Shown in pieces: positions 3,402 to 39,857 of a stretch of 39,857 bases of DNA. This DNA comes from Octopus bimaculoides (lineage: Eukaryota). Location: NCBI RefSeq assembly GCF_001194135.2, contig NC_068988.1, positions 4,542,299 to 4,582,155 on the forward strand. Reading direction: 5' to 3'. The notes under the pieces were generated by a model. That model made no database searches and was not told where the DNA came from. It saw only the letters and a program-made list of their open reading frames with translations. The first letter of the stretch is position 1; each line of letters starts with the position of its first letter. The position numbers and the translations under genes are program-made.

Positions 3402-3404
<3 letters not shown>

Positions 3405-3469
<65 letters not shown>
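3405..3469. repeat. (TA)n microsatellite
   Basis: Perfect TA run. Confidence 0.97.
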
Positions 3470-3470
<1 letters not shown>

Positions 3471-3482
3471 GTAAAGATATAT

Positions 3483-4200
3483 ATAAGACTATGTCTGACT
3501 TCCTATTCTCTATCTCATGGTCGCACTGAATCATAAAATCCCATAAGATCTTTGGATTTCTATTTTCGACAATGCCTACAGGTTTGTGGTCGTACCAATC
3601 TTTTGCTCTCTGAAGCCCATACTTGCTGCAAAGTGTCCAATGGACAAGCCTGGCTACATTGTCGTGGCGTCTCTTATATTCCTTCTGGGCTAGTGGCGTA
3701 CATTGGCTGGTAATATGTCATACAGTTTCACCATTTTGTCCACAGATTCTGCACTTATCACTTTCTAATGTGTTGTCTGTTCTGTATTTTACGTAGTTTG
3801 TTTTTAGTGCTTGCTCATGGGCAGCACAGATTAGAGCTTCCGTTTCCGGTTTTGAATCACTTTTAGTCATCCACAGCCATCTTTTTTTCTCTGCCTGTCT
3901 TATTTTCTACAGCCCTATGAAATTGACCATGCAGTTTTGTCTATCAGGAGTTGATCCTTGGTACCTCTGCACTTACGCTTACAACCCTTCTGCTCATGTG
4001 GCAGGACTCCATTTTTTCCAGATGTTCGTACATTGATTCCTCGAGTATTCCAATCAATAACTTCCACATAAGTGACAAACAGGATATCGGCCTGTAATTG
4101 TCTACCGTATCGCCTTTTCGATGTTTTTCAGGCACAGCACTGTCCTACTCAATGTCAACCACTCTGGTATTACTTGGTCGGCATTTAACAAGGTATTGAG
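3483..4200 (-). mobile_element. Truncated, internally deleted R4/Dong-type non-LTR retrotransposon (RT fragment + CCHC knuckle + RLE start)
   Basis: Manual minus-strand translation with frameshifts: LNTLLNADQVIPEWLT...[15 protein letters not shown]...[22 protein letters not shown] (RT N-terminal part), joined to WLWMTKSD...ALICAAHEQAL...CRICGQNGETV*HITSQC...EYKRRHDNVARLVHW...KILWDFMIQCDHEIENRKSDIV (CCHC and PD-type RLE motif). One stop and frameshifts present. Confidence 0.9.
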
Positions 4201-5640: not shown

Positions 5641-5717
5641 NNNNNNNNNNNNNNNNNNNNNNNNNNNNNNNNNNNNNNNNNNNNNNNNNNNNNNNNNNNN
5701 NNNNNNNNNNNNNNNNN
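5641..5717. other. Assembly gap (N run) flanked by (TA)n
   Basis: 77 N. Confidence 1.
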
Positions 5718-7239
5718 TATATATATATATATATATGTATGTATAGCTTAAGTATTTACATACGTTAGATTGACACATAAATAGATTACATATAAATAGA
5801 TTTAGTCAGAGAAGGAGAAAGTACGAGAGAGGGAGAAGGAAATTGAAAGAGCAGAATTGAAATCGGGAGAGATATTGCTGCATCGTAAAGTTCTTAACCA
5901 AATTTCAATGGCGACAGTTCCGTTATAATCAGTGAATGTTTGAACATGACAGATAAAAACTAAATTCTAATGGGACAAAAATCACATAAACATTTCTAAT
6001 GGTATCATATGTAATATTATGGATGACGTGAAACCATTTCAATAAATGTTTCGTTTCCTTTCCATGCTATTACACGCTGAAGGAATCATTACGCATTAAA
6101 TCCCTGTTGGTTGAAAAATGGCAGTTTCTACATGATTTTATAAGTTGAGATATCTTTCTCATTGCATTTGTGCGAGCTACAATCAGTTTTGCGCCCAGCT
6201 GTACATATCATACAACAATCAGTATTTCCTTGCAAAAAGAAATAAAAAAAGAAACACTGAATGTTCCGGGAATAAATTTAAAAACATAAAAAACACTGAT
6301 AGAAGCCAGATTACATTGGATCACACAGCATCAATATAAGTTGAAAGTTACTATTCTTCCATGATGACGTATAGAGATATACAGACACTCTTTACTACAA
6401 TTGTTGGCTTTAGATTTAAGTTCGCTGCAGTTGTTTTATTTAGTAGCTTCTTTCTGTTATCCATTCTATTTTTGAATCTCAATTCTCACAGATGCTGCAA
6501 GTATATATCAGATTATTCTATACATAATATTTGTAGTATATTTATGTCCAGAAGAAAAATTTAGCGATCATCTTCAAAGTGACAAGAAACTTAAAGCGAA
6601 GTTTGGAATCTAAAACTTAGGTATTTTACAATTATAAAGGAAGTCAAAAATGTATATTCATGTTCATTTTACAACAAATATATAAACAAATAATAATTCC
6701 CGCTTATGACAGTAGAACTGGTTTCCGTGGTTAACTTTGTTTACGCATTGCAGTATGTATACACACGTGCGCGCGCGCACATATACACACACATACACAC
6801 AGACAGAGAGATAGGTAAATAAATGGATTGATAGACAGACAGTTAGCCAGACAGATAAGTAGATAGATAGAGAGAGAAAGGAACAGATAAATGAATATAT
6901 ATATGTTGCTTTATGTCGAGCGAATGAGAAAGGAATGCTCTATTCATGTTGTAGAGGATATATTTTATTGAAAACTATATACTTATATACTTATACATCA
7001 TACCCAACTATATACATATATGTATGTCTATGTGTGCGTTTGTGTGTGGTGTGTATGTATGTATGTATAGCTTTCTGTTCCGTTTTGGTAGGATCAATAA
7101 GAAAAGCTCTCCATACAATGAGAGATAAATATCATTTCATGTATACAGATACGCGCTACTAATAGTTTCTTGCTGTGGAGACAGTTGTCAAGTCAGGTTT
7201 TTGATAACACACCTAGTGTCTCCAAGAAATCGTAGGGCT

Positions 7240-7895
7240 CTGAGCACATGCTGTGTTCCATTTGAAAATTAAGACGCTGATACATGAGAAAACACGAGAA
7301 AAGTATGAGAAGGTTGATACAAAAATTGGAAGGGTGACTAAAAATGGAAAAAGAAAAGAACAGATAGGAAATTACAGTTATGCCCCATTCGACCGTAAAA
7401 GCTAAACGTAAACTAGTTGTAGAATAATTCAACGGGGAGGGGACCAAAGTCTGCGAGACAGTTGCTCAATCCAGAAAGGCTTGTGTCAGCCTGTTCGCCA
7501 AAAGAAATTTGTCCACATGCATGAATTTGCTGAAAGTTTCGGATCCGGAATTAAGTAGTGCGGTGAAATTCTTAGAGTTAAAAAGTATGTGCGATCTTTC
7601 AGCTATGAATAAGTTGCATATTTTAGATCTGAATTATATATGGCATGGATTCCTCTACGATTCTTCACATGATTGGGAGTCTACGGATACAGAAATTCAA
7701 GACGTTAGCCAATCCATAAATATTAATAAAAAATAAGTGAAGGAACTAGCAAAAGAAATTAAAAAGAAGTGTACAGTTAAAGCAATCTTATTGACTCCAG
7801 GCCAAAGTGGATTGAAATCCCTCAAGATAAACGACAAGTTGCAATTTTATCTCAAAAGCCTTCAGCAATCTGCTTTTAAAAAAATCCTGATGTAG
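7240..7895 (+). pseudogene. Decayed reading frame of unknown family (probably an old mobile-element ORF)
   Basis: Frame 7428-7892 gives 155 codons with one stop (7734-7736) in very AT-rich DNA; Lys-rich; upstream part appears in another frame; no motif recognised. Confidence 0.35.
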
Positions 7896-8396
7896 TCATG
7901 TGGTTGTGTCTCTCAATAGTTAGTAATTCACTAAATTAATATATATTTTGTATGTAAAGCAATATAGCATTGCAACATCTTTTTACTGTATTCTCATCCA
8001 GTTAGGACATAATAATGTTCAGTTAACGATATATCAGTGAAAGTCATTCGGTCTCTTTACGTCTGCTATATTTATGAATCGACTTTTCTTTATGTATTTA
8101 TGATGAAACTAAATATTTATGATTAAACTTATTTTCTATAATTACGTGTAAATTTTATTTTGTATGTTTATAACAAAAGGATATTCTGCATATTTATGAC
8201 TAAAATATATTTTGGTATATTTATGATTAAAATATAGATCCACTGCCTAAAGATGTGCCGTCTTTCTCAGAAAGATATTTCGATGCAACCCTTCAAAATA
8301 TTCTAGAAAGAACTCGAACTGCTCTCGATGAGTAGATCTAGGAAGGAAAACATATTAGAAAAATCTCTTCCAGTTGAGAGATAGCAACGGAGCCTC

Positions 8397-8658
8397 TATG
8401 TTGTTGTTCGATCATCTAAAAACAGCGATTAGATCGCCCTCAAATGATATCCTATTGTCTAATATAGAATGACAACGATTATAACTATATTCCTCTTACC
8501 TATGTAGTATACGATCGGCTGCGGGGGCTGCGGTGGTGGTGGTGGCTGCAGTGATGTACTTTTTGTTTGTTGCTGTTTAAAACATGTTAGCAAACCTTGG
8601 ACAGAATGATGATCAACAGCGTTTTATTCATTTCCATAACAATGTTTTGGTGTTATGT
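8397..8658 (-). repeat. Inverted, circularly permuted copy of 8688-8943
   Basis: 8397-8462 is the exact reverse complement of 8688-8753; 8461-8658 is the reverse complement of 8749-8943 apart from one extra GGT unit; TATGT at both ends. Confidence 0.95.
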
Positions 8659-8691
8659 AGGACTATTTTAATAATCCTTTTCTTACTTTAG

Positions 8692-8947
8692 ACAATAGGA
8701 TATCATTTGAGGGCGATCTAATCGCTGTTTTTAGATGATCGAACAACAACATAACACCAAAACATTGTTATGGAAATGAATAAAACGCTGTTGATCATCA
8801 TTCTGTCCAAGGTTTGCTAACATGTTTTAAACAGCAACAAACAAAAAGTACATCACTGCAGCCACCACCACCGCAGCCCCCGCAGCCGATCGTATACTAC
8901 ATAGGTAAGAGGAATATAGTTATAATCGTTGTCATTCTATATTACAG
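8692..8947 (+). other. Candidate exon (acceptor ccttttcttactttag|, donor cag|gtaagt; alternative donor ag|gtaaga at 8905)
   Basis: Consensus splice signals and a CCA/CCG/CAG tract (LQPPPPQPPQP); no frame is open across the full 256 nt. Confidence 0.4.
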
Positions 8948-11870
8948 GTAAGTAAGAATGTTACAAACAGTCCTCAAGTATATAATGTTATGCGCTCTAC
9001 ATCATTCCAAAATATAGCATCGAACCAAAACTTAGAAATGAAAAATGCGGACAGTAACGGATTTCGAATAGCAACCAATTGCTTGACGTTTAAAACAACG
9101 CATACATGCGACACATTTAAAGCAGTTACAAAGTAAATCACCAGTGTCAAAGTGTGTATGTGTGTGTGAGAAAGAGAGAGATATAGTGAGGGTCTATGTG
9201 AGTGAGTGTGTATGACTGAATGCGTGTATGTGAGTGAGTGTATGTGTGTGTGTGTGCACGCATTAGACAGCGCACTCAGTTCAACAAACATTTAGATCTG
9301 TGTTTATCTGGTTGGAATCATACAGTGTCAGAAGTTTATGACATTTTACTCGCTGACAAAAAAAATTATATTGTAATATCACTCATCAGAATATTTTTAA
9401 TTCGTCATTATTTCACATTACTTAGCGAGAGAATAACAAACAGGTCTTATTGAAACTCTTACCTGTGATAAACTTGCGGTTTATCCCCGGAAATGTTTTT
9501 TCTACTCTCATCCGCTCGCCGGAATTATGCACCGTCGCTTAAAAGACCTTGAAAGAAATATCGTCATTCAACTGCCATTTTATCTTTTGTGTTTTTAATG
9601 ATCTGAGGGCAATGATTGCATCATGTTGAAACGAAAATATACGCGTTGTAATCAGAAGCTCATCTGCAATGTTTAGTGGCCAAGAAAGTGTTAATTTCCT
9701 TTCATAAGCTAACACACACATGTTGTCGAAATTCTTAATCAATATCTGTATCAGTGAGAACTCGGTGGATTACAAATGAAGTGATTGATGCATGAAACGA
9801 ACTCGATTTAATTAATTTCCTCTTATTCTTGCTTAATGAACTATACTCCTCTGGAACATTCAGATCCATCGCGTGTTCAATAATCGTAAAATCAAACTAA
9901 CTTCCTGTCTCAATTCATGGATAAACTATCGAAAGCAATATGCATGATAATATGCATAAATTGTAAACAGAGTTAAATTATTTTACTGGTATTATGGTTT
10001 CCATCGATATACTTAGGAATGAATTGCTATAGTCTAGGCAGCTAATTAGGGATTCTTGTGTAAGATTGGAATGCTATTATACCGTTGACGAATATAAAGT
10101 CTGCATTTGGCTGTAATAAATTATTTTATCTTGTTTGCTAACCTAATACATTAAGACTATTGTGGTTTGTGTTACATTCTATGTAATTTTAGAATCGGTT
10201 AAAATAGCAAATAGAATATTCTTTACAATGAAACACAAAAGACATCAAAGACAGGAATTAGCGACTGTTAGTGTTAAAAGGAAACATGTAAGCATAATAA
10301 TAGTTTGACCAAGTGTAAGTTAAGAATGAGTTCACTTAGCAAGTTAAGAACTTCAAAGTTGAATATTACAATATTACATTTATTACAACATTACATTTAC
10401 AGTATTAAGTTATTATTCAAACGCTAACAATTTTGAAATACGTGGAGAGGAACAATGAACAGTTGCATTAAGATTTTTCCCTGGAGAAGCTAGGAACATG
10501 ATTCGAATAAAGAAATATTCCGAAGATGTATCATAAGTGAATAATATATATTCAGATATTATTTAGAGAAATCCGCCTAACGATAATTGCGATAACTGCT
10601 TCCAGGATACACATGCATCCATGCGCACACAAACAGATACCCGCGTGCGTGTGCCTGTCAGTCTGTCTGCTCACATGTATTAATACAAGAACGCACACAT
10701 ACACACAGATAGATGTATGCGCAGAGGAATATGTATTTGATGCAAATACACACGTAACAGAGTAACAGAATGTAGCAGAAGCGCAGCACAATATAGTAAA
10801 ACAATATATGTTGTACCGGAGAGTTATTTTAAGCGTAAATATTTTCAAAACTGTAATAAATAAAAAGTTTTATCGCAATATTCTCATACAAAACACTGAA
10901 TGGTGTCTCTGTTTTGAATTAAGTTTTAATTTTAACCATGCTTTCTATCATAAGTTTGTGTTTATTATAAGAACCTCCTACACTGAAATTTATTTTGGAA
11001 GTCAGAGGGTTTGCTGTCCATTTTCCGCCATCGTGATGTTTTCATGCAGTAGATGACAACTTTCAGCTGTTATCTCCTTTGTAGCGTAAACAGTAACACC
11101 ATAACGTGACTTCGACAGATGAGATCCTTTAGGAAAGATGTGGATCTCAGTTTTATGCACTTGTTTAGTTATTTACACAAAAGAGGTTTGCACACATTAC
11201 ATTTGTATGCCATCTAAGGCTACCCGGAGATATTTAGTTGAAATTTAGCATTAAATTCTCTATGATACTATGGAAGACTGATGTATAGGAAGATTGTTTG
11301 GGAGTCATGGATTTCAGTAAATTGCAGTTATTGAAACGATGAGCAGATAAGCTTTCTTGCATGAAAGTCTTTTTCTAGACAATCAACAATCGGTTTTTTA
11401 AGTTTTCATGCATGTTCTGGAAGAAATTTATAGAGAGTAAGCAATTTATAAAGGTTGAGGAGGAGAACTAGTTTTTTCGTATGCATATGACATTGCTACA
11501 TACTGAGGTAGCCATGGGAGTTGACGAGGAAATATGATATGAAATGACCGGAGATCTTTGGACAGAATGCGGAGACAAATAATTTACTTAAGAATTAATG
11601 TGAAGACACGAAAATTTTGACGGCTTCGTTATCAAAACCATTTCATTTTTACAGGTTCCTAACGCATAAGACTAAGCATCCTGTAGATCTGACTAATGAA
11701 TATTTTACAGATGGTTAGGGTTAGGGTGAAAGACAAGAGGTGATTATGGTTGTGTATAACGGTTACCGTAACTTCTCAAATGTTGCAGAGAAAGAAAGAA
11801 GTGTAAGGGTATAAGGACACACGCTAAAGAAAAAGATCTAAAAGTTTTGCAAAAATAAAAGCAAATACAT

Positions 11871-12624
11871 CAGGGGGCGGCAACCTACGGCCCGCGGGCC
11901 GGATCCCACCTGCAAAAGGATTTTGACCGGCCCGCGAGTACCGATGCTCAATGATTTTTTTTTATTCAAAATTTGAATTTATTGAAATATGAGAGACGAG
12001 ACTTCCGAATACAATAAAAGGCCTGCTGTTACATTCTTCTGCAAATCTTCTGATTCACTCGACCTAATGTCCTCCACAAGAGATGGAGACAATATCAGAA
12101 TGTTTTCAAATGGAATTGATTTAATATGCAGTATGAGGACTTTTTTGAGATATATATTTTTCCAAGTGGGAAGTATACCAACGTAGTGAATCATGCAAAA
12201 AAGATGGCATCTTTGTTTGGAAGTACTTATCAGTGTGAGCAATTATTTTCCAAACTGAAGCAAACTAAGAACAATTTGAGAACAAGATTATCTAATAATA
12301 ATCTTGATAATACCTTACCCTTGGCATTAGCAAGTTTGAAACCTTGAGGAGCTTTCAAGGAACAAGAATCATCAAGTTCTATGTATTTTTAAGACATTTT
12401 AAACAAATGATTCCAACGATGTCTTAAATTGAATAAATGATATTTTTCCATTACTACATTCATCTGTGGTTAATACAAATTATTTTCCAGTATAGTCAAC
12501 ACTCGTGATTAAATTTTAGCTTGTGTAATTTTCCATAATGATTCTTTTATGGCCTCCGTCCGGCCCGCTATCCGTCATTAATACTCGATACGGTCCGTGG
12601 AAGTAAAGAAGTTACCGACTCCTG
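11871..12624 (+). mobile_element. Non-autonomous hAT DNA transposon (Charlie/Buster group, OC1/hAT1-like ends)
   Basis: TIRs cagggggcggcaac / gttaccgactcctg (11/14 match); subterminal cggcccgcgggccgg motifs; flanks aaatacat / aaataaag (6/8, possible degenerate 8-bp TSD); ORF 12126-12347 has the hAT C-terminal dimerisation motif ASLFGSTYQCEQLFSKLKQTKNNLRTRL. Confidence 0.9.
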
Positions 12625-14123: not shown

Positions 14124-14170
14124 NNNNNNNNNNNNNNNNNNNNNNNNNNNNNNNNNNNNNNNNNNNNNNN
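14124..14170. other. Assembly gap (N run)
   Basis: 47 N next to a TA repeat. Confidence 1.
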
Positions 14171-19148: not shown

Positions 19149-19214
19149 TTTAATACAATAATTACTCTACACATATATATACCTTTCCGATGAATTTTCC
19201 AATATTGATTTCAT

Positions 19215-19965
19215 GATAATAATATATTATAAAATATATATATATATGTATGTATATGTGTTTATATGTATGTATATGTGTTTATATGTATGTATATGTG
19301 TTTATATGTATGTATATGTGTTTATATGTATGTATATATATATGTTTATATGTATGTATATATATATGTTTATATGTATGTATGTATATATATATATGTT
19401 TGTATGTATGTATATATATGTATATATATATGTTTATATGTATGTATGTATGTATGTATATGTTTATATGTATGTTTATATTTTTATGTATATATATGTT
19501 TGTGTGTATATGTGTGTATGTATGTATGTACATGTGTATATTTGTCTATATATTTGTATATTTGTTTGTATATATTTGTAGCTGNNNNNNNNNNNNNNNN
19601 NNNNNNNNNNNNNNNNNNNNNNNNNNNNNNNNNNNNNNNNNNNNNNNNNNNNNNNNNNNNNNNNNNNNNNNNNNNNNNNNNNNNNNNNNNNNNNNNNNNN
19701 NNNNNNNNNNNNNNNNNNNNNNNNNNNNNNNNNNNNNNNNNNNNNNNNNNNNNNNNNNNNNNNNNNNNNNNNNNNNNNNNNNNNNNNNNNNNNNNNNNNN
19801 NNNNNNNNNNNNNNNNNNNNNNNNNNNNNNNNNNNNNNNNNNNNNNNNNNNNNNNNNNNNNNNNNNNNNNNNNNNNNNNNNNNNNNNNNNNNNNNNNTAT
19901 ATATATATATATATACATACATGTGTGTGTATGTGTGTATTTGTATGCATTTATATATGTATGTA
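19215..19965. repeat. Complex TA/TG/TATG simple repeat, including a 20-bp tandem unit (tatatgtgtttatatgtatg), spanning a gap
   Basis: Direct; explains the MYVY/ICIY ORFs. Confidence 0.92.
19585..19897. other. Assembly gap (N run)
   Basis: 313 N. Confidence 1.
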
Positions 19966-21991: not shown

Positions 21992-23165
21992 ACACTCTGA
22001 AACTTCTTGTCATCATACCAAGTGTCTTTTTTATTTTGTTCGTGTCCCTCTCTAATCCTGTTCCAGAACTTGTTGCGGTGTAGGGGGGGGGGGCATTTAC
22101 CGTTTTTGTCATCTCTTAGAATGCGTTCGAATCTTGTTTTCGCTCCTTTGTACATTTTGATTCTATCGTACTGTGTATCCAGAACGTTGCATTCGGAATA
22201 TGTATTGCTGGATGTGTCGTCCTTCTTGTTGTTGGCATAGTGGGGATACATTCCTCATTACTCTGCCAAAAGGATGTTGATCTTGGTAGTATTTGACATC
22301 GCTGAGTCACTACGGATTACCAGTGGGTTAGCCATAGGTTTACAATAGTGTGAGTGGAGTAAACAGGGTTTAGCAGTTCCGTTAATCATAGTATTTTCTA
22401 ACCACAGCTCAGTATCTAGGACAGGTAATCTATTACTGGGGTGTTTAGAGGGTATTCTACGGTAACCTTTATACTGTTATGGATAGTCAGCTATGTGTTG
22501 TATAGCTGTCATCACCTGTTCTTCATTTAGTAGAGTGTCCATATCTGTCTTACTATTACATTTCACGACAAGGTTAACGTCCTCAACGTATCGAGAGTAC
22601 ATAGCTAAGTGGATGTTACGGGTCGCTTAGCAGTGTAAAATGTTTGCCTCACCATACCATGAAGAGGTTAGCAACATCACTGGCGATTCCTACTCCAATA
22701 GCGCCTTAAAAATATGGTTTCTAAGAGTAGTTCTAAGGCTGACACCGATAGCGTGTTCGACAGTAGATGTGATGTCGTGTACATCTGAAGGTCGGTAGTC
22801 TGGCTTCGTTCAGCCATGCCAGCGTTCACTGTAGGTCTTTTTGTATGCAGAGGTTATGGTAGGTTGTTTACCTCGTTTGTTACGGGTGGGATAAGCCTAT
22901 ACAAGATTATTGCGGTACAAGGCAGGGTTAGGAAGAGGCCTAGTTCATATACGTCCACATTTTTAAATATCATTATTACTCTCACAAATTAACTCGATAC
23001 ATTTTTCGGTAGCAAAGTCTACATCAATGGAAGGATGTAGTGACACCACATCCATGCTACCTACGATGTGGTCACTGAGGTCACATGTGTTGTTGCATAC
23101 ATCTGCAAATAACTCTATTAAGGGTCGTATAAATTGTGAGAGTATATACGAACAATTTTACAGCG
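21992..23165 (-). mobile_element. Penelope-like element reverse transcriptase remnant (possibly Naiad clade)
   Basis: Minus-strand translation with stops and frameshifts: LSQFIRPLIE...VGSMDVVSLHPSID (RT motif A)...GVGIASDVANLFMVW...MYSRYVEDVNL (RYVDD-like)...IKVTVEYPSKHPSNRLPVLDTELW...HSHYCKPMANPLVIRSDSAMS...RVMRNVS; truncated into (TA)n before any GIY-YIG domain. Confidence 0.85.
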
Positions 23166-26993: not shown

Positions 26994-27885
26994 CACAGGA
27001 TGTAGTATCTAAAAATTTCCGGACTAGTTCTGTAACGTGCTAGCAGATGGCAGCACACGATTGCGTGCGCAGTGAGAGTTAGTGACATTTCTGAGGCAGT
27101 GTGCCGAGTGACATCACTATAATCCGCAAGTTGTAAAATTTGTGTTTTTGTCATCACGTGTATTTTGTAGTCTCCATGGACTGGAAGCTGGAACATAGAG
27201 CCAGCGTAAAATTTTAGGCTGAACTTGAGAAATCTGCTACAGAGACAGCGATGATACTTCGGCAAGCTTATGGCGACGAGGCAATGGGTCGTATGCAATA
27301 TTTCGAGTGGCATGGGCGCTTCAAAAGCGGGGGAACGTTCTTGGAAGACTATGAGCAATCTAGAAGACCTGTCACGAATGTCACCCTCGGAAATGTGTTA
27401 TTATGCATCGGGAATTCGTACCTCATGGCCAGACCGTCAATGGAGAGTTCTGTTGCGACGTTTTGAAGCGTTTGAGGGAAGGCATTGAGAGAAAGTGACC
27501 CGGATCTCTGGAGGGTGGCGAATTGGATTCTTCGTGATGACAATGCACCCTGTAAGCGATATCTCCTCACTCGCGAGTTTCTCGCCAAAAAACATGGTAA
27601 TGTCCCTGCACCCGAGCTATTCGCCAGACGTAGTACCTGCAGACTTCCATTCTTCCCCAAGATGAAAATACAACTTAAAGGTCGCCGTTTTAACACCGTT
27701 GTCGAGAAGAGCGAATCGCAGAATGTTCTCCACTCGCTGACAGAAAACGACTTCCAGGCCGGGTCCCAAGAGTTGCAAGAACGCTGGGACCGGTGTATTG
27801 CTACGCAAGGTGACTATTTCGAAGGTAAATATAATATTTTTTATCAAACATAACTAATCCGGGTGCTTTTTCAAACTGCTTCGTG
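26992..27885 (+). mobile_element. Mariner (Tc1/mariner) transposon, internally deleted, with degenerate TIRs
   Basis: Left end tatctaaaaatttccggact and right end aatccgggtgctttttcaaactgcttcgtg are degenerate mariner TIRs; transposase remnants inside. Confidence 0.9.
27176..27853 (+). pseudogene. Mariner transposase pseudogene
   Basis: MDWKLEHRASVKF*...LRQAYGDEAMGR..FEWHGRFKSG (HTH); HREFVPHGQTVN; WILRDDNAP (second D); HPSYSPDVVPADF (YSPDLAPSD-like); KGRRF; RWDRCIATQGDYFE; stops and frameshifts. Confidence 0.9.
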
Positions 27886-28550
27886 TGCACAGAACTTAGG
27901 ACGTTGCCTATTACTAGAGGCGCAGCGGCATCTTTATTGCATGTATGGTAATACGCAACAATTTTAACTGTCTTTTATTAAATATATTTTTATTGTTTAC
28001 AATTTACATACATAGGTCAAATACATTTGCTTTTGCTTATATATTCATATGCTCAAATCCTTTATTGTTGTTGAAACTGTTTTATTGTTTTTTAGTGTTG
28101 TTGTGATTAAGCAATGTAAATTAATGATCAAATTTTATCAAATTAATATTTGAATGGTAGACAAACTGAAAAAAAAATCTGTACACATGCATTTATCATT
28201 TCTAACTCTTTTCTCTCTCTCTCTCTCTCCCTCTCTCTCTCTCTCCCACTGTCTCCCACTCCCGAACTCATTTTGCGCCGTTCTGAGTGGGCGGCGTCGC
28301 TCACGTTGAAAAGCACTGCCTTAAGTCAATGTTAAACAAATTTATAGTTAGCTTTCTCTGCTGGTAGATATAGTTTTGTATTTTTCAAACATCTATTTCT
28401 GTGTGCTTCTTCTGTGTACATGAATAGGACAGTGGAGTGGACACTTTTCTATAGAAATGCACTGTTCAACGGTAAAGTGCTGTACTAATTATAGGATGCA
28501 AATTGTCCAGCAACATGATTCTTTGAATACAAATAGTAAATTATGGTCAG

Positions 28551-29577
28551 TGACGAACAGTGACCACACCTGGTCCTCGTCTCGGAAGCACTGGTGATAT
28601 CGTAGCCTCTGCGCATCAGCAGCCACAGCATACCGAGTCCCCCATTCTGCTGACCAGTGGAACGCGTCTCTTCCAAAGAAAGCTAAAGAGTACGCGCTCA
28701 AGTTTGTTCAGACGTAAAATCGAGCAAGGAAAGACGGTCAGGTGGTAATATACGACGGAGGCGATGTAAGTATTCGTCATCTCTACCCGAACTCTGAGGG
28801 ATAGCCTTCTCTCAACCCCTTTCTGGGGTAATTTGGCCACCCCACTCGTTACCTTGTCCCAGCTCTTTTCCATCTAGAGATGTGAACCAAAATAGACCCC
28901 GAGCAATTTAACTGGTCACTCCGTCCAGCGTCCCACGATGTAATTGCCCTGCATGGACGTGCCTTTCCAAATGCCGAGTTGCAGGCCCACTGACAGTTAA
29001 TTTTTTCTCCTGCCACCGCCTCGTATGCCGACACGGTTTTCCCATGCCCTAGTTCGTGCGGGATGCCTCACGATCCCTCAAATTTTCTCAGTAGTGATCC
29101 TAGATCCAGAACACACCAAAGAGACGGGAACGGACACGCTTGGGGAACTGAATGCATTATTCTGAATGGTTCCGAGAGGTAACAATCCACCCGATCAACC
29201 GAGCAGATGTCGCTGTAGAGTGTAGTGATTCCGCCACGGAAAACGGGACCGAAACCAGCCGTCGTGAGAACGACCACCAAGTATTGATGTCGACCCTATC
29301 GAAGGCTTTCGACTGATCCAAATTAATCATGGGCCCTACCCATGCCAGTTTGTTTATTCACCTTGTGTGTGATGCATCGCATGAAGTGAAGGTTGTGGAT
29401 TGATCTGCTTGGCATTATGCACATTTGCCCATCATCAATCAGTTACTCTACGACAAGCGCCACCTCAGCCAAAATTTTGAAATCTGTGATCAGCAGCGTA
29501 TGGGCCTAAACATTTATGTTTGATGTCTCTTGTTTGGGTCCTGCTTCTTTCAGCAGTGCCACCGCTCCTCGACAAAT
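28551..29577 (-). mobile_element. L1-clade (Tx1-like) LINE ORF2 remnant (RT and downstream region)
   Basis: Minus strand: RPITLL.TDFKILA, INLDQSKAFDRVD, GFGPVFRG..., SV.QACPFPSL (QGCPLSP-like), YEAVAGEKIN, LSLRVRVEMTNTYIASVVYY, KLERVLFSFLW, GGLGM, QVWSLFV. Confidence 0.88.
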
Positions 29578-30779: not shown

Positions 30780-32995
30780 AAAGATTGATGAACAAATAAC
30801 TGGTTTCGCAATTAGTCAGCGAGCTCAATCAAATTTCTCCATTGGCGATAAAATAAGTACAAGTTCAAAAACATAATCTGAGTCTCATCCTTAAAGTCAA
30901 TACATCGTTGATTCTTCGAAAACTGCGGGAATCGCCTCGAGAAACCATGCATAGTGTTACAAAGATAGAAAACAACTGCAAATGAAAATTCTTAAGCACA
31001 GGAGGTAGCTTTGCTAAATACATATGTTGTCACATTGTAAAGGGGGCTTCGCCAGTAGTTAATATCAGCATGCTAAAAATAATTGGCAATTACTGCTATA
31101 GTATTACGATAAGTGAGTAATTACTGGTGTTGTCAATAGTCGGAAACGGAAGTAAAAATGTGTTGTTAGCTTTAAAATATGCAAGATGTGTCTTTTCCAT
31201 GTTTAATCCTCAAGTTGCGACCGGCTTTTGGACTATTCTCTCAGTGATATATTTCTGTGTCAATACACAGAAATATATCATTAGCAAGCAAAAATTATCG
31301 AGCATTATTGATGGAATTTCTCGATATTTATTTGTTTCTCTTGGCTTCATCAGCAGCACGTATCCACTGGCACACGCAAACTTAAACGAATTTGGTTATA
31401 ACTGCCATAGTAAATGAATGTCTGAAAAATCACGAGTGTCGGCATTAACGCACAAGTTTAATAAAAATACGTTACTAGCGACAGAAACATTATTAGTTAA
31501 AAGAAGATATGTCTGTACCATGCTTAAAGCAGATACATCGTTGAGTCTTATAAACTGCGGTATTCGTTTCCAGAAAATAACTCTTATAGTTGTATAATAT
31601 TAAAAAAAAACAGTTATACATGTAGCAGACGAAAAGCATCTGGCAACTCAAGTTTCACAGCTAAACACGTATATTTGCTTACCTTGTCTTAGTAGCAAGT
31701 ATCCTCTGGTATCTTTGTGATGAGAAAAAAGTAGCTACTACTAATATAATGAAAAAGGGATTTTAAAGAAATGACTCGTGTGGCAATTAATCGGCGAGTT
31801 AAATAAAATTATTAGATGAGGAAAATCGTGCAGCGAAGTTAAGTGCGTTGATAAATACGTATTTCTGTATTGGTGATGGGCTTCCTCAATAGTAATTATT
31901 CCACAGGCATCCGCACGCTAAATCAATTTTTCCCATTGCAAATACAGTAGAACACTGCTTAGAATAAAACTGTGGTTGTAATTAAATGACAAGTGAAATA
32001 AAAAATAAAATCGCTATTAGTAAGATGAACATTATTAGTTCAAGAAACATCTCAATCTGTTGTCCTTAATGTATATGCATCGTTGAAACCTTTATAAACT
32101 GTGATAAATGTCGCGAGAAAGAACTTTTATAGATGAATAGTGTTAAACATGTCAGACATATATTAGCAGCAGGCGAAGATTGTTCAGTAGCGTTAGTAGC
32201 ATTGCTTAATACGTATTTTTGTATCATTGAGCTTCGTCAGTAGCAATTATTTACTGGCATCTGCATACGAAAATGAATTCTGTCATGACTGACAGTTAAA
32301 TAAGCCATATGTATATCATACTTAAAGCAGATATATCGTTGGCAGCTTGATATACTACGGTATCCGTGGCAAGAATACAACTGTTAGAGCCTTGTAGTGC
32401 TTAAGTACAGATGTTTATACCAGAAACAGATGCTAATCATTCAGACATAATGGCTGCATTGCTACATACGTATTTCTCCTTATGGGACTTTGTTAGTAGC
32501 GTCTCCTCTAGTATCCACATACTAAGAAAAACTCTGTCACTATTGATATCATAAGAGAATGGCTGAAATGATATCGCTGTTAGCCGCCAAGGTGAATGAA
32601 ACTTCTATTTTGCTGACTGAAGCAACATTAGTTTCAAAAAGCAATGTGTGTATCGTACTTAAAGCAGATACATCGCTGTAAGTCTGATAAAATTGATATT
32701 TGTTTAGAGAAAATCATCTCTTACTGATGAATAGTTGTAAAACATACATAAAAATTGTACAGCTTAGTTGGTGCCATTACTAAATGCGTATTTCTATTTT
32801 TTGTACTTTATAATGTTTTTCTTCGTGATCAGTAAGTATCCACTAGCAGGCGCGTACTTAAAAGTTCGGTCATAACTGCTACAGTAAAACAGAGGCTGAA
32901 AAAGAATCACTGGTGTGACAATTATTTGGGAAGCGAAATAAATTTTTTTGTTAGCGACAGAAGCAGTACCAGTTCGAATAGTAACGATGTACCTT
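30780..32995. repeat. Old degenerate tandem array, about 7 units of ~320 bp
   Basis: Motif cttaaagcagatacatcgttg recurs at about 30890, (31201), 31523, 32065, 32321, 32658, (32991); motif taaatacgtattt...cttcgtcagtagc...tatccactggca recurs at about 31015, 31325, 31662, 31852, 32206, 32463, 32781. Confidence 0.85.
31245..31280. other. Perfect 16-bp inverted repeat with 4-nt loop
   Basis: tgatatatttctgtgt-caat-acacagaaatatatca. Confidence 0.95.
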
Positions 32996-37705: not shown

Positions 37706-39555
37706 GGAATTAAATTAAGCAGACATTCAAGATGTCTACATTCGAGGACATTTAAGGGGAGCAATCTGAGTTAATTATATCGGTATTTTTGTATGCTATT
37801 AATATAGTTAGGTACTTTCTGCAATTAACTAAGAATTCCAGGTGTATCAAAGTAAGTTTTTAACTTTTCACAGTTGATCATTGCAAGGATTTACGTCACT
37901 CAATGACGATATTTTGTTATTTTGGCACATATCGGATTTTACTAAAGAAAACTTGGAGACAAGTAACATACTCGATACTCCGCGATGTGACTTAATATGA
38001 ACTTTATCTTTGATACAACAGAAATAAAGTTAAATTACGTAGTTATGACTTGGAAGAAAAACAAAGGCTATTTCGTTTACTGATTATAACAAAGTGTATC
38101 CAGACGTACACACACACATATAATGCATATTGTACAAGCCCTATTTTTAAATAAAAATTAAAACTTAAGAAAGAAAATAATTCCACATCTATCGTAGATA
38201 TTAATAAATAAATAAACAAACTTCCTACAGATTTCTCGACTTTGTTTTCTGTTGATCTCCATACTAACGTCATTGTAATGCACCAACAATTCACTGTCTT
38301 TAAAGGATTAATATAGAATTTCTGCAAGATTTGAGACTAAAGTACTTTTTCAACATCACCGATCTACGCAGGTTAACTTTGCAAATAACAACAGGTTCAC
38401 CTTAGCAACAAACGTTTATGCAAATCCTGAAGAACAGCTAAAGGGATGATCTATCACTGTAAGAAAATTTATACAAAGTACAGGTTTGTGAACAGGGCAA
38501 AGTTTATAAATAGAAAATCTACGTTACAAGTAATTTATTTGTTGTGACAGTTTACGGTTAACAGCAATGATATCAACGTATAATTAGTTCGCTAATGTAA
38601 AATATAAAGTAACGGGAATAAGGCTTTAAGAATTGGTCGAGTTGATTTAGCATAATTTGGAAGTGGTGGGGAAATCAAATATCTCAGTAAAAATGCGCTT
38701 TGTTAGCGTAAACAGAAACACCGTAGGACTTGCCAGGATTTGTTTCTATTCTGTAACAGAAATAAAGCATAAATGTGATAATACGGTTAATAGAGAATAG
38801 AAGAGACTTTATTTAGATTAACTCTGTATCCTCGAATATTTTCTGACATCATTAACAACGCGGACAGAGTTGTGCATATTGATACACACAAACAACAAAT
38901 CGGCCGTTAGTTATCTTCTTTGAAAAGTTCACACTCAACAACTAAATTATTACCATTTGCCCAACAAACTTTGAGTGTTACAGTGTTTTCAAACATATTT
39001 CTCATCCGAACACATCGCTACAGCGATTTCTGATTTTAATTAAAAGAGCTGACCTTAAAAATATGGCAGATAGATGACAATAATACCCGAAATATATAAT
39101 TCGAAGTGCAATCACAACTTTCAGAAAGATTATATTTCTCAAAATAGTGAGTGGAGCAAAAGCGAGACCACGTCATCCTAAAGTATTCGTAACAAATAAC
39201 TGCACACAACACAAGTGTTCAATTAAACTAATTAGAAAAAATATTTCCCATTGTCTGCATATCTCACTATCTTTCCTACACACACTGATTTGCTCTCTCT
39301 CCCTCTCTCCGGCTCTTTCACAGAAACACACACTCTTTATCTGAATGAATCTACACACGTTATATATATACACATATATACGACATATAAATACATGTGT
39401 GTGTATGCGTGTTTAATGGTTCGTGGAGTATATGAACGTTTACAGTTTTGATATATATATATATAAATAACACGGGCAATAAAGATATTGCTTTGCGTGC
39501 GTTTGTTTTGTGATTATTAATCTGAGTTTCTAGCTGAGGGCGTCACTCCCATTAG

Positions 39556-39629
39556 ATACACACACAAACACACGCACACACACACATATATATATACATA
39601 TATATATATATACATACATATATATATAC

Positions 39630-39663
<34 letters not shown>

Positions 39664-39823
39664 CTATCTATATATACATACATACATATATATATGCATA
39701 TATACATACATTCATAAATATATATACATATATACATTCAAATATATATATATATACATATATACATTCATATATATATATATATACATATATACATTCA
39801 TATATATATATATATATACATTC

Positions 39824-39857
<34 letters not shown>
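39556..39857. repeat. Complex (CA)/(TA)/(TACA) simple repeat
   Basis: Direct. Confidence 0.95.

Follow-up and report, generated by a model that had tools for sequence, protein, structure and literature searches.

Short-range inverted template switching is a common and documented class of mutation, and the switch type 1-4-3-2 of the four-point model makes inverted repeats (PMC5453318). The four-point paper acknowledges events of several rounds but leaves them explicitly outside the model. Serial switches primed by microhomology are known as the hallmark of FoSTeS/MMBIR, at least as that work is cited in two other papers (PMC7450558, PMC7403614). Circular DNA intermediates are described as leaving a permuted order of segments as their signature, with microhomology of 1-2 bp (PMC7450558). 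Satellite circles have been described to re-insert in such a way that the first and the last truncated repeats sum to one monomer (PMC7403614). At the RNA level, a circRNA-derived pseudogene is defined by the exact back-splice junction of its parent (PMC4897178).

The present analysis shows an inverted, circularly permuted local duplicate of a short unit, and its structure has been confirmed to the base. Two copies, the upstream copy U and the downstream copy D, lie in the window, by which we mean the whole stretch of 39,857 nt that was analysed (Table 1). Direct reading, a repeat scan and a scripted re-alignment were used to place them. D reads X and then Y. U reads rc(X)-rc(Y), so that its reverse complement has the permuted order Y-X, whereas an ordinary inverted duplication would read rc(Y)-rc(X). 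There are no substitutions between U and D in 254 nt, and the sole difference is one GGT more in U. The longest exact blocks common to both copies are 66, 83 and 124 nt. On the D strand the X/Y joint within U reads CTATATTAGACAATAGG, and the TTA/TAA at this joint is common to both edges of D. Similarly, the TATGT found at both ends of U is the complement of the ACATA at the X/Y overlap. Each copy thus amounts to a single unit with a few redundant nucleotides at its end (5 in U, 3 in D), and the implied circular unit is 254 nt in the D version and 257 nt in the U version. All three joints carry microhomology, of 5, 3 and 5 nt, with no filler and no deletion. The source copy is intact and no sequence was lost at the insertion site. 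What the first-pass annotation had stated about the sequence was reproduced by the repeat scan and the re-alignment, namely a copy 29 bp upstream of D in the order rc(X)-rc(Y), identity apart from one GGT unit, a new Y-to-X joint with TTA microhomology, and a copy that starts and ends with TATGT to match the internal ACATA. Its limits for X (8688-8753) were borne out, but Y, which it had ended at 8943, extends to 8944, and the circle of ~256 bp that it proposed has to be replaced by the two sizes given above. Low-complexity sequence aside, self-BLAST finds no local inverted repeats of 25 nt or more in the 39.9-kb window besides U and D, and no third copy of the 254-nt unit was found within it. 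Chance origin of the pair is excluded.

Table 1. Coordinates of the duplicated unit, its junctions, the splice-like motifs and the transposable-element remnants in the window
Feature	Position	Strand	Remarks
U, inverted circularly permuted copy including both TATGT	8397-8658	+	262 nt
rc(X) arm	8397-8462	+	66 nt, 100% reverse-complementary to X (8688-8753)
J1, microhomology TATGT, left edge of U	8397-8401	+	P(at least 5 nt by chance)=0.008; junction sequence gagcctcTATGTtgttgtt
J2, microhomology TAA, permuted joint of Y end and X start	8460-8462	+	P(at least 3 nt)=0.066; junction sequence ctattgtcTAAtatagaa
rc(Y) arm	8460-8658	+	199 nt, reverse-complementary to Y (8749-8944) except for the additional GGT
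(GGT)4GG run	8532-8545	+	one unit longer than CC(ACC)3 at 8862-8872 in D
J3, microhomology TATGT, right edge of U	8654-8658	+	junction sequence ggtgtTATGTaggacta
Unique spacer between U and D	8659-8687	+	29 nt
Acceptor-like motif ccttttcttactttag	8676-8691	+	AG ends 1 nt inside the left microhomology edge of D
Left arm TTCTTACT of 8-bp inverted repeat flanking D	8680-8687	+	P=0.0175 by chance
D, colinear X+Y	8688-8944	+	257 nt; TTA at both ends (8688-8690, 8942-8944)
ACATA, X/Y overlap of D	8749-8753	+	complement of the U-flanking TATGT
Second, internal donor-like AG/GTAAGA	8903-8910	+	U copy on the minus strand near 8500
CAG/GTAAGT, only perfect donor consensus in the window	8945-8953	+	starts at the first base after the D end (8944); AG/GT boundary 3 nt outside
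Right arm AGTAAGAA of 8-bp inverted repeat flanking D	8950-8957	+	
LINE-type reverse-transcriptase fragments, frameshifted	3403-4144; 28488-29357	-	
hAT-like C-terminal remnant	12120-12344	+	
Degenerate transposable-element remnant	22261-23157	-	
Mariner/Mos1-like transposase remnant	27218-27850	+	Pfam HTH_48

The best explanation of this locus is an uncommon outcome of a known mutation class, one which imitates a circle. It is probable, though well short of settled, that a single, recent and local error of replicative or repair synthesis produced U through three microhomology-primed switches, either of the FoSTeS/MMBIR kind or by snap-back of the polymerase-theta type. A stalled fork could have been the setting in the first case and a break in the second. 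A 3' end in TATGT, originally 29 nt upstream of D, would have annealed to the opposite-strand ACATA, the first one downstream, and would have copied X backwards to 8688. It could then have slipped by TAA/TTA to 8942-8944 and gone on to copy Y backwards until TATGT was made again, and this new TATGT would have re-annealed at the departure site. By leaving and returning through one 5-nt microhomology, such synthesis would give a product resembling one circuit of a circle, for which a free circle would be unnecessary. The extra GGT would be a slip of the polymerase in the trinucleotide run, during or after the synthesis.

Several observations bear on this proposal. Random inverted joins in the window rarely share as much sequence as J1, J2 and J3 do (Table 1), and microhomologies of 5, 3 and 5 nt set against such low chance values indicate that the joints were primed by microhomology. 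All templates lie within 550 bp (8397-8944), and the absence of any substitution in 254 nt points to a young event. FoSTeS/MMBIR calls for microhomology at every breakpoint junction, which is what was found here. It further calls for at least two switches between nearby templates with replicative gain and a source that is kept, and the locus shows three junctions with both copies intact. The four-point model, on the other hand, calls for one contiguous reverse-complement fragment, and here there are two fragments in permuted order. The three junctions, their microhomology, the kept source, the intact insertion site and the near-identity of the copies can be read off the sequence directly; the enzyme or pathway, the polarity and the occurrence in vivo are inferred. 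It should be noted here that a pure DNA model does not predict the match of the unit edges to an acceptor-like tract and to the only CAGGTAAGT. The middle switch, from 8688 to 8944, uses 3 nt, and TTA is present at five other sites in 8688-8960. In addition, 257 nt in two fragments is far above the typical short template-switch or polymerase-theta insert. Triple template switching (FoSTeS/MMBIR) had been named in the first-pass annotation as the alternative to a circle; with the copy at 29 bp from its source, it is now the better-supported of the two.

Some other routes to the same arrangement were considered and rejected. The 8-bp repeat TTCTTACT/AGTAAGAA flanking D, which is marginally unusual, could form the stem of a "lollipop" aligning 8688 with 8944. 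Its predicted probability in the single-stranded DNA fold is ~0, and a fold made to contain it is ~19 kcal/mol less favourable. Enumeration by hand of single inversions and deletions, starting from a simple palindrome or a tandem duplicate, gave no way to the order A-B-s-A'-B' in fewer than three novel joints. A target-site duplication of the transposon type was also discarded, as TATGT and TTA belong to the circular sequence of the unit itself and are microhomologies.

The arrangement A-B-s-A'-B' is symmetric, and either copy may be the source with the same number of junctions and the same microhomologies. In the first history D is the source, closure takes place at TTA, opening and insertion take place at TATGT, and the implied empty site is GGAGCCTCTATGTAGGACTATTTT. 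In the second history U is the source, closure takes place at TATGT/ACATA, D is inserted at TTA, and the implied empty site is CTTTTCTTACTTTACAGGTAAGTAAG. The empty site of the second history, ending in ccttttcttactTTAcag/gtaagtaagaa, is a juxtaposed acceptor and donor motif and is predicted to fold as a 9-bp hairpin (dG -6.5 kcal/mol, z=-2.7). If this history is true, the "exon" would be a by-product of insertion into such a juxtaposed motif. Going downstream from the departure point, no ACATA comes before the one used in the first history, and 740 nt contain only two. The first switch of the second history, by a 3-nt TAA, would have to pass over five nearer TAA sites. Because of the first-downstream 5-nt ACATA in the one case and the bypassed TAA sites in the other, D as the source is mildly favoured. 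The earlier assumption that the downstream unit was the source had been taken for granted, and the mirror history with U as the source is equally parsimonious. No paralogous flanks showing an empty site were found inside the window, and two exact k-mers from the unit gave no matches in metagenome contigs.

The edges of D lie close to splice-like motifs. The sequence CAGGTAAGT has a single occurrence in 79.7 kb (the window on both strands), directly beyond the right edge of D. With an acceptor-like site taken as YAG preceded by at least 11 pyrimidines in 14 nt, the density of such sites is 1.17 per kb per strand, and 8691 is the end of one of them. In the whole window, an acceptor-like site and an AGGTRAGT stand 50-400 nt apart in one place only, 8691/8947. 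At both edges the unit thus comes to within 1-6 nt of such a motif, an acceptor-like tract on the left and the only CAGGTAAGT on the right. The rough joint chance of this is ~1e-5, with the two motifs partly dependent, since the complement of GTAAGT (ACTTAC) consists largely of pyrimidines and an 8-bp inverted repeat flanks D. The coincidence of splice motifs with the edges of D is statistically real. The donor (cag/gtaagt) and the acceptor (tttag/) that had been reported close to the joint were accordingly found again, the donor as a unique site.

The reading of the exon-sized unit as an exon fared less well, and on sequence grounds D is unsupported as an exon beyond these motifs. Stops are present in all three forward frames of 8692-8947. 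A composite of 27 ORFs from 7129-10562, which included the ORFs of both copies, was unmatched among 5.8 billion sequences, no Pfam homology of the unit was found, and an exact-protein look-up of the adjacent 105-aa ORF returned no record. Nowhere in the window could a host-gene exon be recognised. The unit does contain a short ORF at 8770-8820 (+), with a minus-strand copy in U, which reads MEMNKTLLIIILSKVC up to the stop and has a signal-peptide-like hydrophobic core. A separate open frame in the unit encodes a stretch with QPPPPQPPQP, in which the GGT/ACC indel is in-frame. Neither the short ORF nor this frame has a database match.

On account of the splice-motif coincidence, readings with a circle stay alive at low probability. 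There is a small chance that the template was an exon-defined circle of ~254 nt, either a microDNA or an exonic circRNA held at the locus and copied by a repair polymerase, which was read once around and became fixed in the germline 29 bp away. If true, it would explain why the edges of D fall at the only perfect donor and at an acceptor-like tract. It would also be a first case in which the return of a micro-circle into a genome can be traced to the nucleotide, and would mean that a hairpin-RNA locus was created against its own exon.

A different kind of doubt comes from the assembly. The window is AT-rich, with a GC content of about 33%, and microsatellites are extremely abundant in it. N runs interrupt it at three places, 5641-5717 (77 nt), 14124-14170 (47 nt) and 19585-19897 (313 nt). 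Their unequal lengths mark a scaffold with size-estimated gaps, which is typical of a short-read draft, and this bears on the trust to be placed in any fine structure of the window. The recognisable coding remnants are all transposable elements (Table 1). Pfam on all non-low-complexity ORFs gave the mariner HTH remnant as the only match, and the best database relatives of the LINE and mariner remnants are at most 76% identical, the nearest named being from penaeid shrimp at 56-59%. Other repeats were seen in passing. Four copies of a 57-91-nt motif with the core CTTAAAGCAGATACATCGTTG lie in 30820-32689 with a spacing of 337-800 nt and 61-79% identity; TRF found no tandem array there and Pfam no match, and the copies could represent a diverged tandem unit of ~600 bp, or else small exons or regulatory elements in several copies. 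An AT-rich motif of ~20 nt (ATATTTATGAYTAAA and similar) recurs four or five times at 8064-8240, 160-330 bp upstream of U. Imperfect TA/TG-rich low-complexity arrays of ~300 nt at 19200-19580 and 39550-39857 are 70-78% complementary across 20 kb, which looks like an effect of microsatellite composition rather than a specific repeat.

It is unlikely that the structure is absent from the germline genome and arose as an assembly or gap-filling error, or as an in-vitro polymerase chimera that reached the consensus. The gaps are of the kind expected in short-read drafts, the copies are 100% identical in their shared blocks, and their 3-bp difference could be allelic. Whole-genome amplification typically makes inverted, microhomology-joined local chimeras, and an in-vitro chimera would look identical in sequence to a fork error or break repair in vivo. 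However, joins over 3-5 nt of overlap are not made by de Bruijn or overlap assemblers, so that reads spanning the junctions must exist. The exact blocks of 66, 83 and 124 nt are resolvable by 150-nt reads, and the locus is 2.7 kb and 5.2 kb away from the nearest gaps.

A circle of DNA is rather unlikely as well. Here a microDNA or eccDNA of ~254 bp, excised or copied from the segment, would have closed at TTA. It would have been inserted at TATGT by microhomology-mediated joining, or an invading 3' end would have copied it for one full turn in a rolling-circle-like MMBIR. MicroDNAs are 200-400 bp long, carry short microhomology and are enriched in exons and 5'UTRs, and the size of the unit and its 3-nt joint fit this description. 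Germline re-insertion of a microDNA has, to our knowledge, never been shown. The locus is exactly permuted in circular fashion, closed at a single joint and opened at a single point: both ends of U fall on adjacent or overlapping positions at 8749-8753, and within U the two ends of D meet at 8460-8462. At the junctions there is only microhomology, of 5, 3 and 5 nt. This is the published signature of a circular intermediate (PMC7450558), and re-insertion through microhomology of 4-7 nt has been proposed for small circles derived from satellites (PMC7403614). Yet published circle-mediated duplications are non-tandem and distant (PMC7450558), and their ancestry is fixed by outgroups, whereas the present copies are 29 bp apart and the mirror history is equally parsimonious, which leaves the polarity ambiguous. 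There is no reason for a freely diffusible circle to land 29 bp from its origin. A circle cut once also has no terminal redundancy, and the duplicated TATGT would still need microhomology-primed copying, the chemistry already invoked for template switching. Of the earlier proposal that a circle integrated through 5-bp microhomology, the permuted topology and the junction microhomology stand, and the circle itself is less well supported, as template switching local to a fork or break predicts the 29-bp distance.

It is very unlikely that U and D come from a third source, that is, that they are pieces of about one monomer, in different phases, of a 254-bp tandem satellite or of a circular or rolling-circle element. 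One unit with a short redundancy (5 nt in U, 3 nt in D) agrees with what has been described for re-inserting satellite circles (PMC7403614), but no third copy is present in 39.9 kb, and it is improbable that two insertions took place independently at a distance of 29 bp and with opposite orientations and have stayed identical. No ribozyme, tRNA-like or other RNA motif was found in the unit and no protein or DNA match in the databases. A mobile or structured-RNA element was rejected after negative searches with Rfam at the gathering threshold, with ARAGORN and with Rfam at E<=10; over the window, Rfam at the gathering threshold gave no match and ARAGORN no tRNA. A ribozyme-bearing circular RNA of the retrozyme or viroid-like kind should carry a self-cleaving ribozyme, and the search at E<=10 gave generic hairpin or chance matches. 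Since there is no ribozyme or RNA family, no tRNA and no further copy of the unit, a mobile-element origin is disfavoured.

The joint itself speaks to the RNA form of the circle. A true back-splice would read TATATTACAG/ACAATAGG, which is 2 nt longer than the observed TATATTA/GACAATAGG (also CTATATTA/GACAATAGG); this difference had already been given by the first-pass annotation and is confirmed, and it tells against the circRNA variant which the same annotation had put forward. The least probable explanation of all is hence the cDNA of a circRNA, in which the exon 8692-8947 would have been back-spliced, held at the locus as a circle and turned into cDNA in one circuit starting at a nick or break at TATGT. 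A good acceptor-like tract lies on one side of D and the window's only perfect donor consensus on the other, and circRNA-derived pseudogenes exist in mammals (PMC4897178), but the exact back-splice junction is not there, the exon status is unsupported (stops in all frames, no homology, no host gene), the copy sits undispersed 29 bp upstream of its source and not away from a parent, and non-colinear joints can arise without true circles according to Dong et al. (PMC4897178).

Whatever its origin, the inverted repeat would have consequences if it is transcribed. As RNA, 8390-8955 is predicted to form a near-perfect hairpin of ~196 bp with a 3-nt bulge and a 90-nt loop, with dG of -388 kcal/mol against -126 +/- 7 for shuffles (z=-38). 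Such a transcript would be a dsRNA of ~196 bp on which Dicer or ADAR could act, and most of D, if it is an exon, would be locked up in the hairpin. Rfam gave a sub-threshold match to MIR5048, a plant long-hairpin miRNA, at 8575-8832 (-), with 77 bits against a gathering score of 160 (E=6e-17); it reflects the generic effect of a long inverted repeat and no family membership. Long inverted repeats in DNA with a short spacer are generally held to be unstable, which again argues for a recent event. If real, the locus shows how a single event can provide a possible starting point for an hpRNA/siRNA locus, or for a fragile palindrome.

Our data indicates that the circle reading is not required, and its RNA form is contradicted at the junction. 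The adjacent copy most likely came from local serial template switching, with which it agrees far more readily than with a circle free to diffuse. Provided that it is real, the structure is a nucleotide-resolved case in which serial short-range switching imitates the signature of a "circular intermediate". Use of the same microhomology for exit and return results in a perfect circular permutation without any circle. This calls for caution in studies which infer re-integration of eccDNA or circRNA from permuted order alone. Owing to the splice-motif match, the locus in turn lends itself to asking whether circles defined by exons ever serve as templates for insertions in the germline.

The locus can be compared with a number of known systems. 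Inverted duplication is a route to the birth of hairpin-RNA and miRNA genes, as for plant MIR genes and Drosophila hpRNAs. The long near-perfect inverted repeat, the short loop and the predicted dsRNA of ~196 bp recall these genes, and the resemblance is one of possible consequence, not of origin. Snap-back inserts made by polymerase-theta (TMEJ) are copied from the flanks within about 100 bp of the break, are often inverted and typically measure 3-30 nt; they arise by iterative cycles of annealing, extension and dissociation with short microhomologies. An insert of 257 nt, as seen here, would be exceptionally long for this pathway. With the circRNA-derived pseudogenes of Dong et al. 2016 the locus has in common a non-colinear joint from the end to the start of an exon-like unit, but the joint is inexact, one putative exon is involved and the copy is undispersed (PMC4897178). 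In colour-sidedness of cattle at KIT and in human cSDPs, A-B/C-D becomes B-A/D-C with a single closing joint and an opening point, and microhomology or tiny indels are found at the junctions, as in the present case. Those are large segmental duplications at distant loci with outgroup polarity, whereas here 254 bp are duplicated next to the source and inverted (PMC7450558). Short-range template switches (Ripley; the four-point model of Loytynoja and Goldman 2017, PMC5453318) are alike in giving an inverted copy of adjacent sequence by one replication error, and the 1-4-3-2 type in particular has departure and return at one site with no loss of sequence. The four-point model has a single inverted fragment; the present locus has two with their order swapped, which takes one extra jump within the template. 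FoSTeS/MMBIR shares with it serial switches primed by 2-5 nt, replicative gain with the source kept, nearby templates and inverted segments. The usual FoSTeS/MMBIR events extend over kb to Mb, whereas this one is contained in 550 bp and mimics one turn of a circle.
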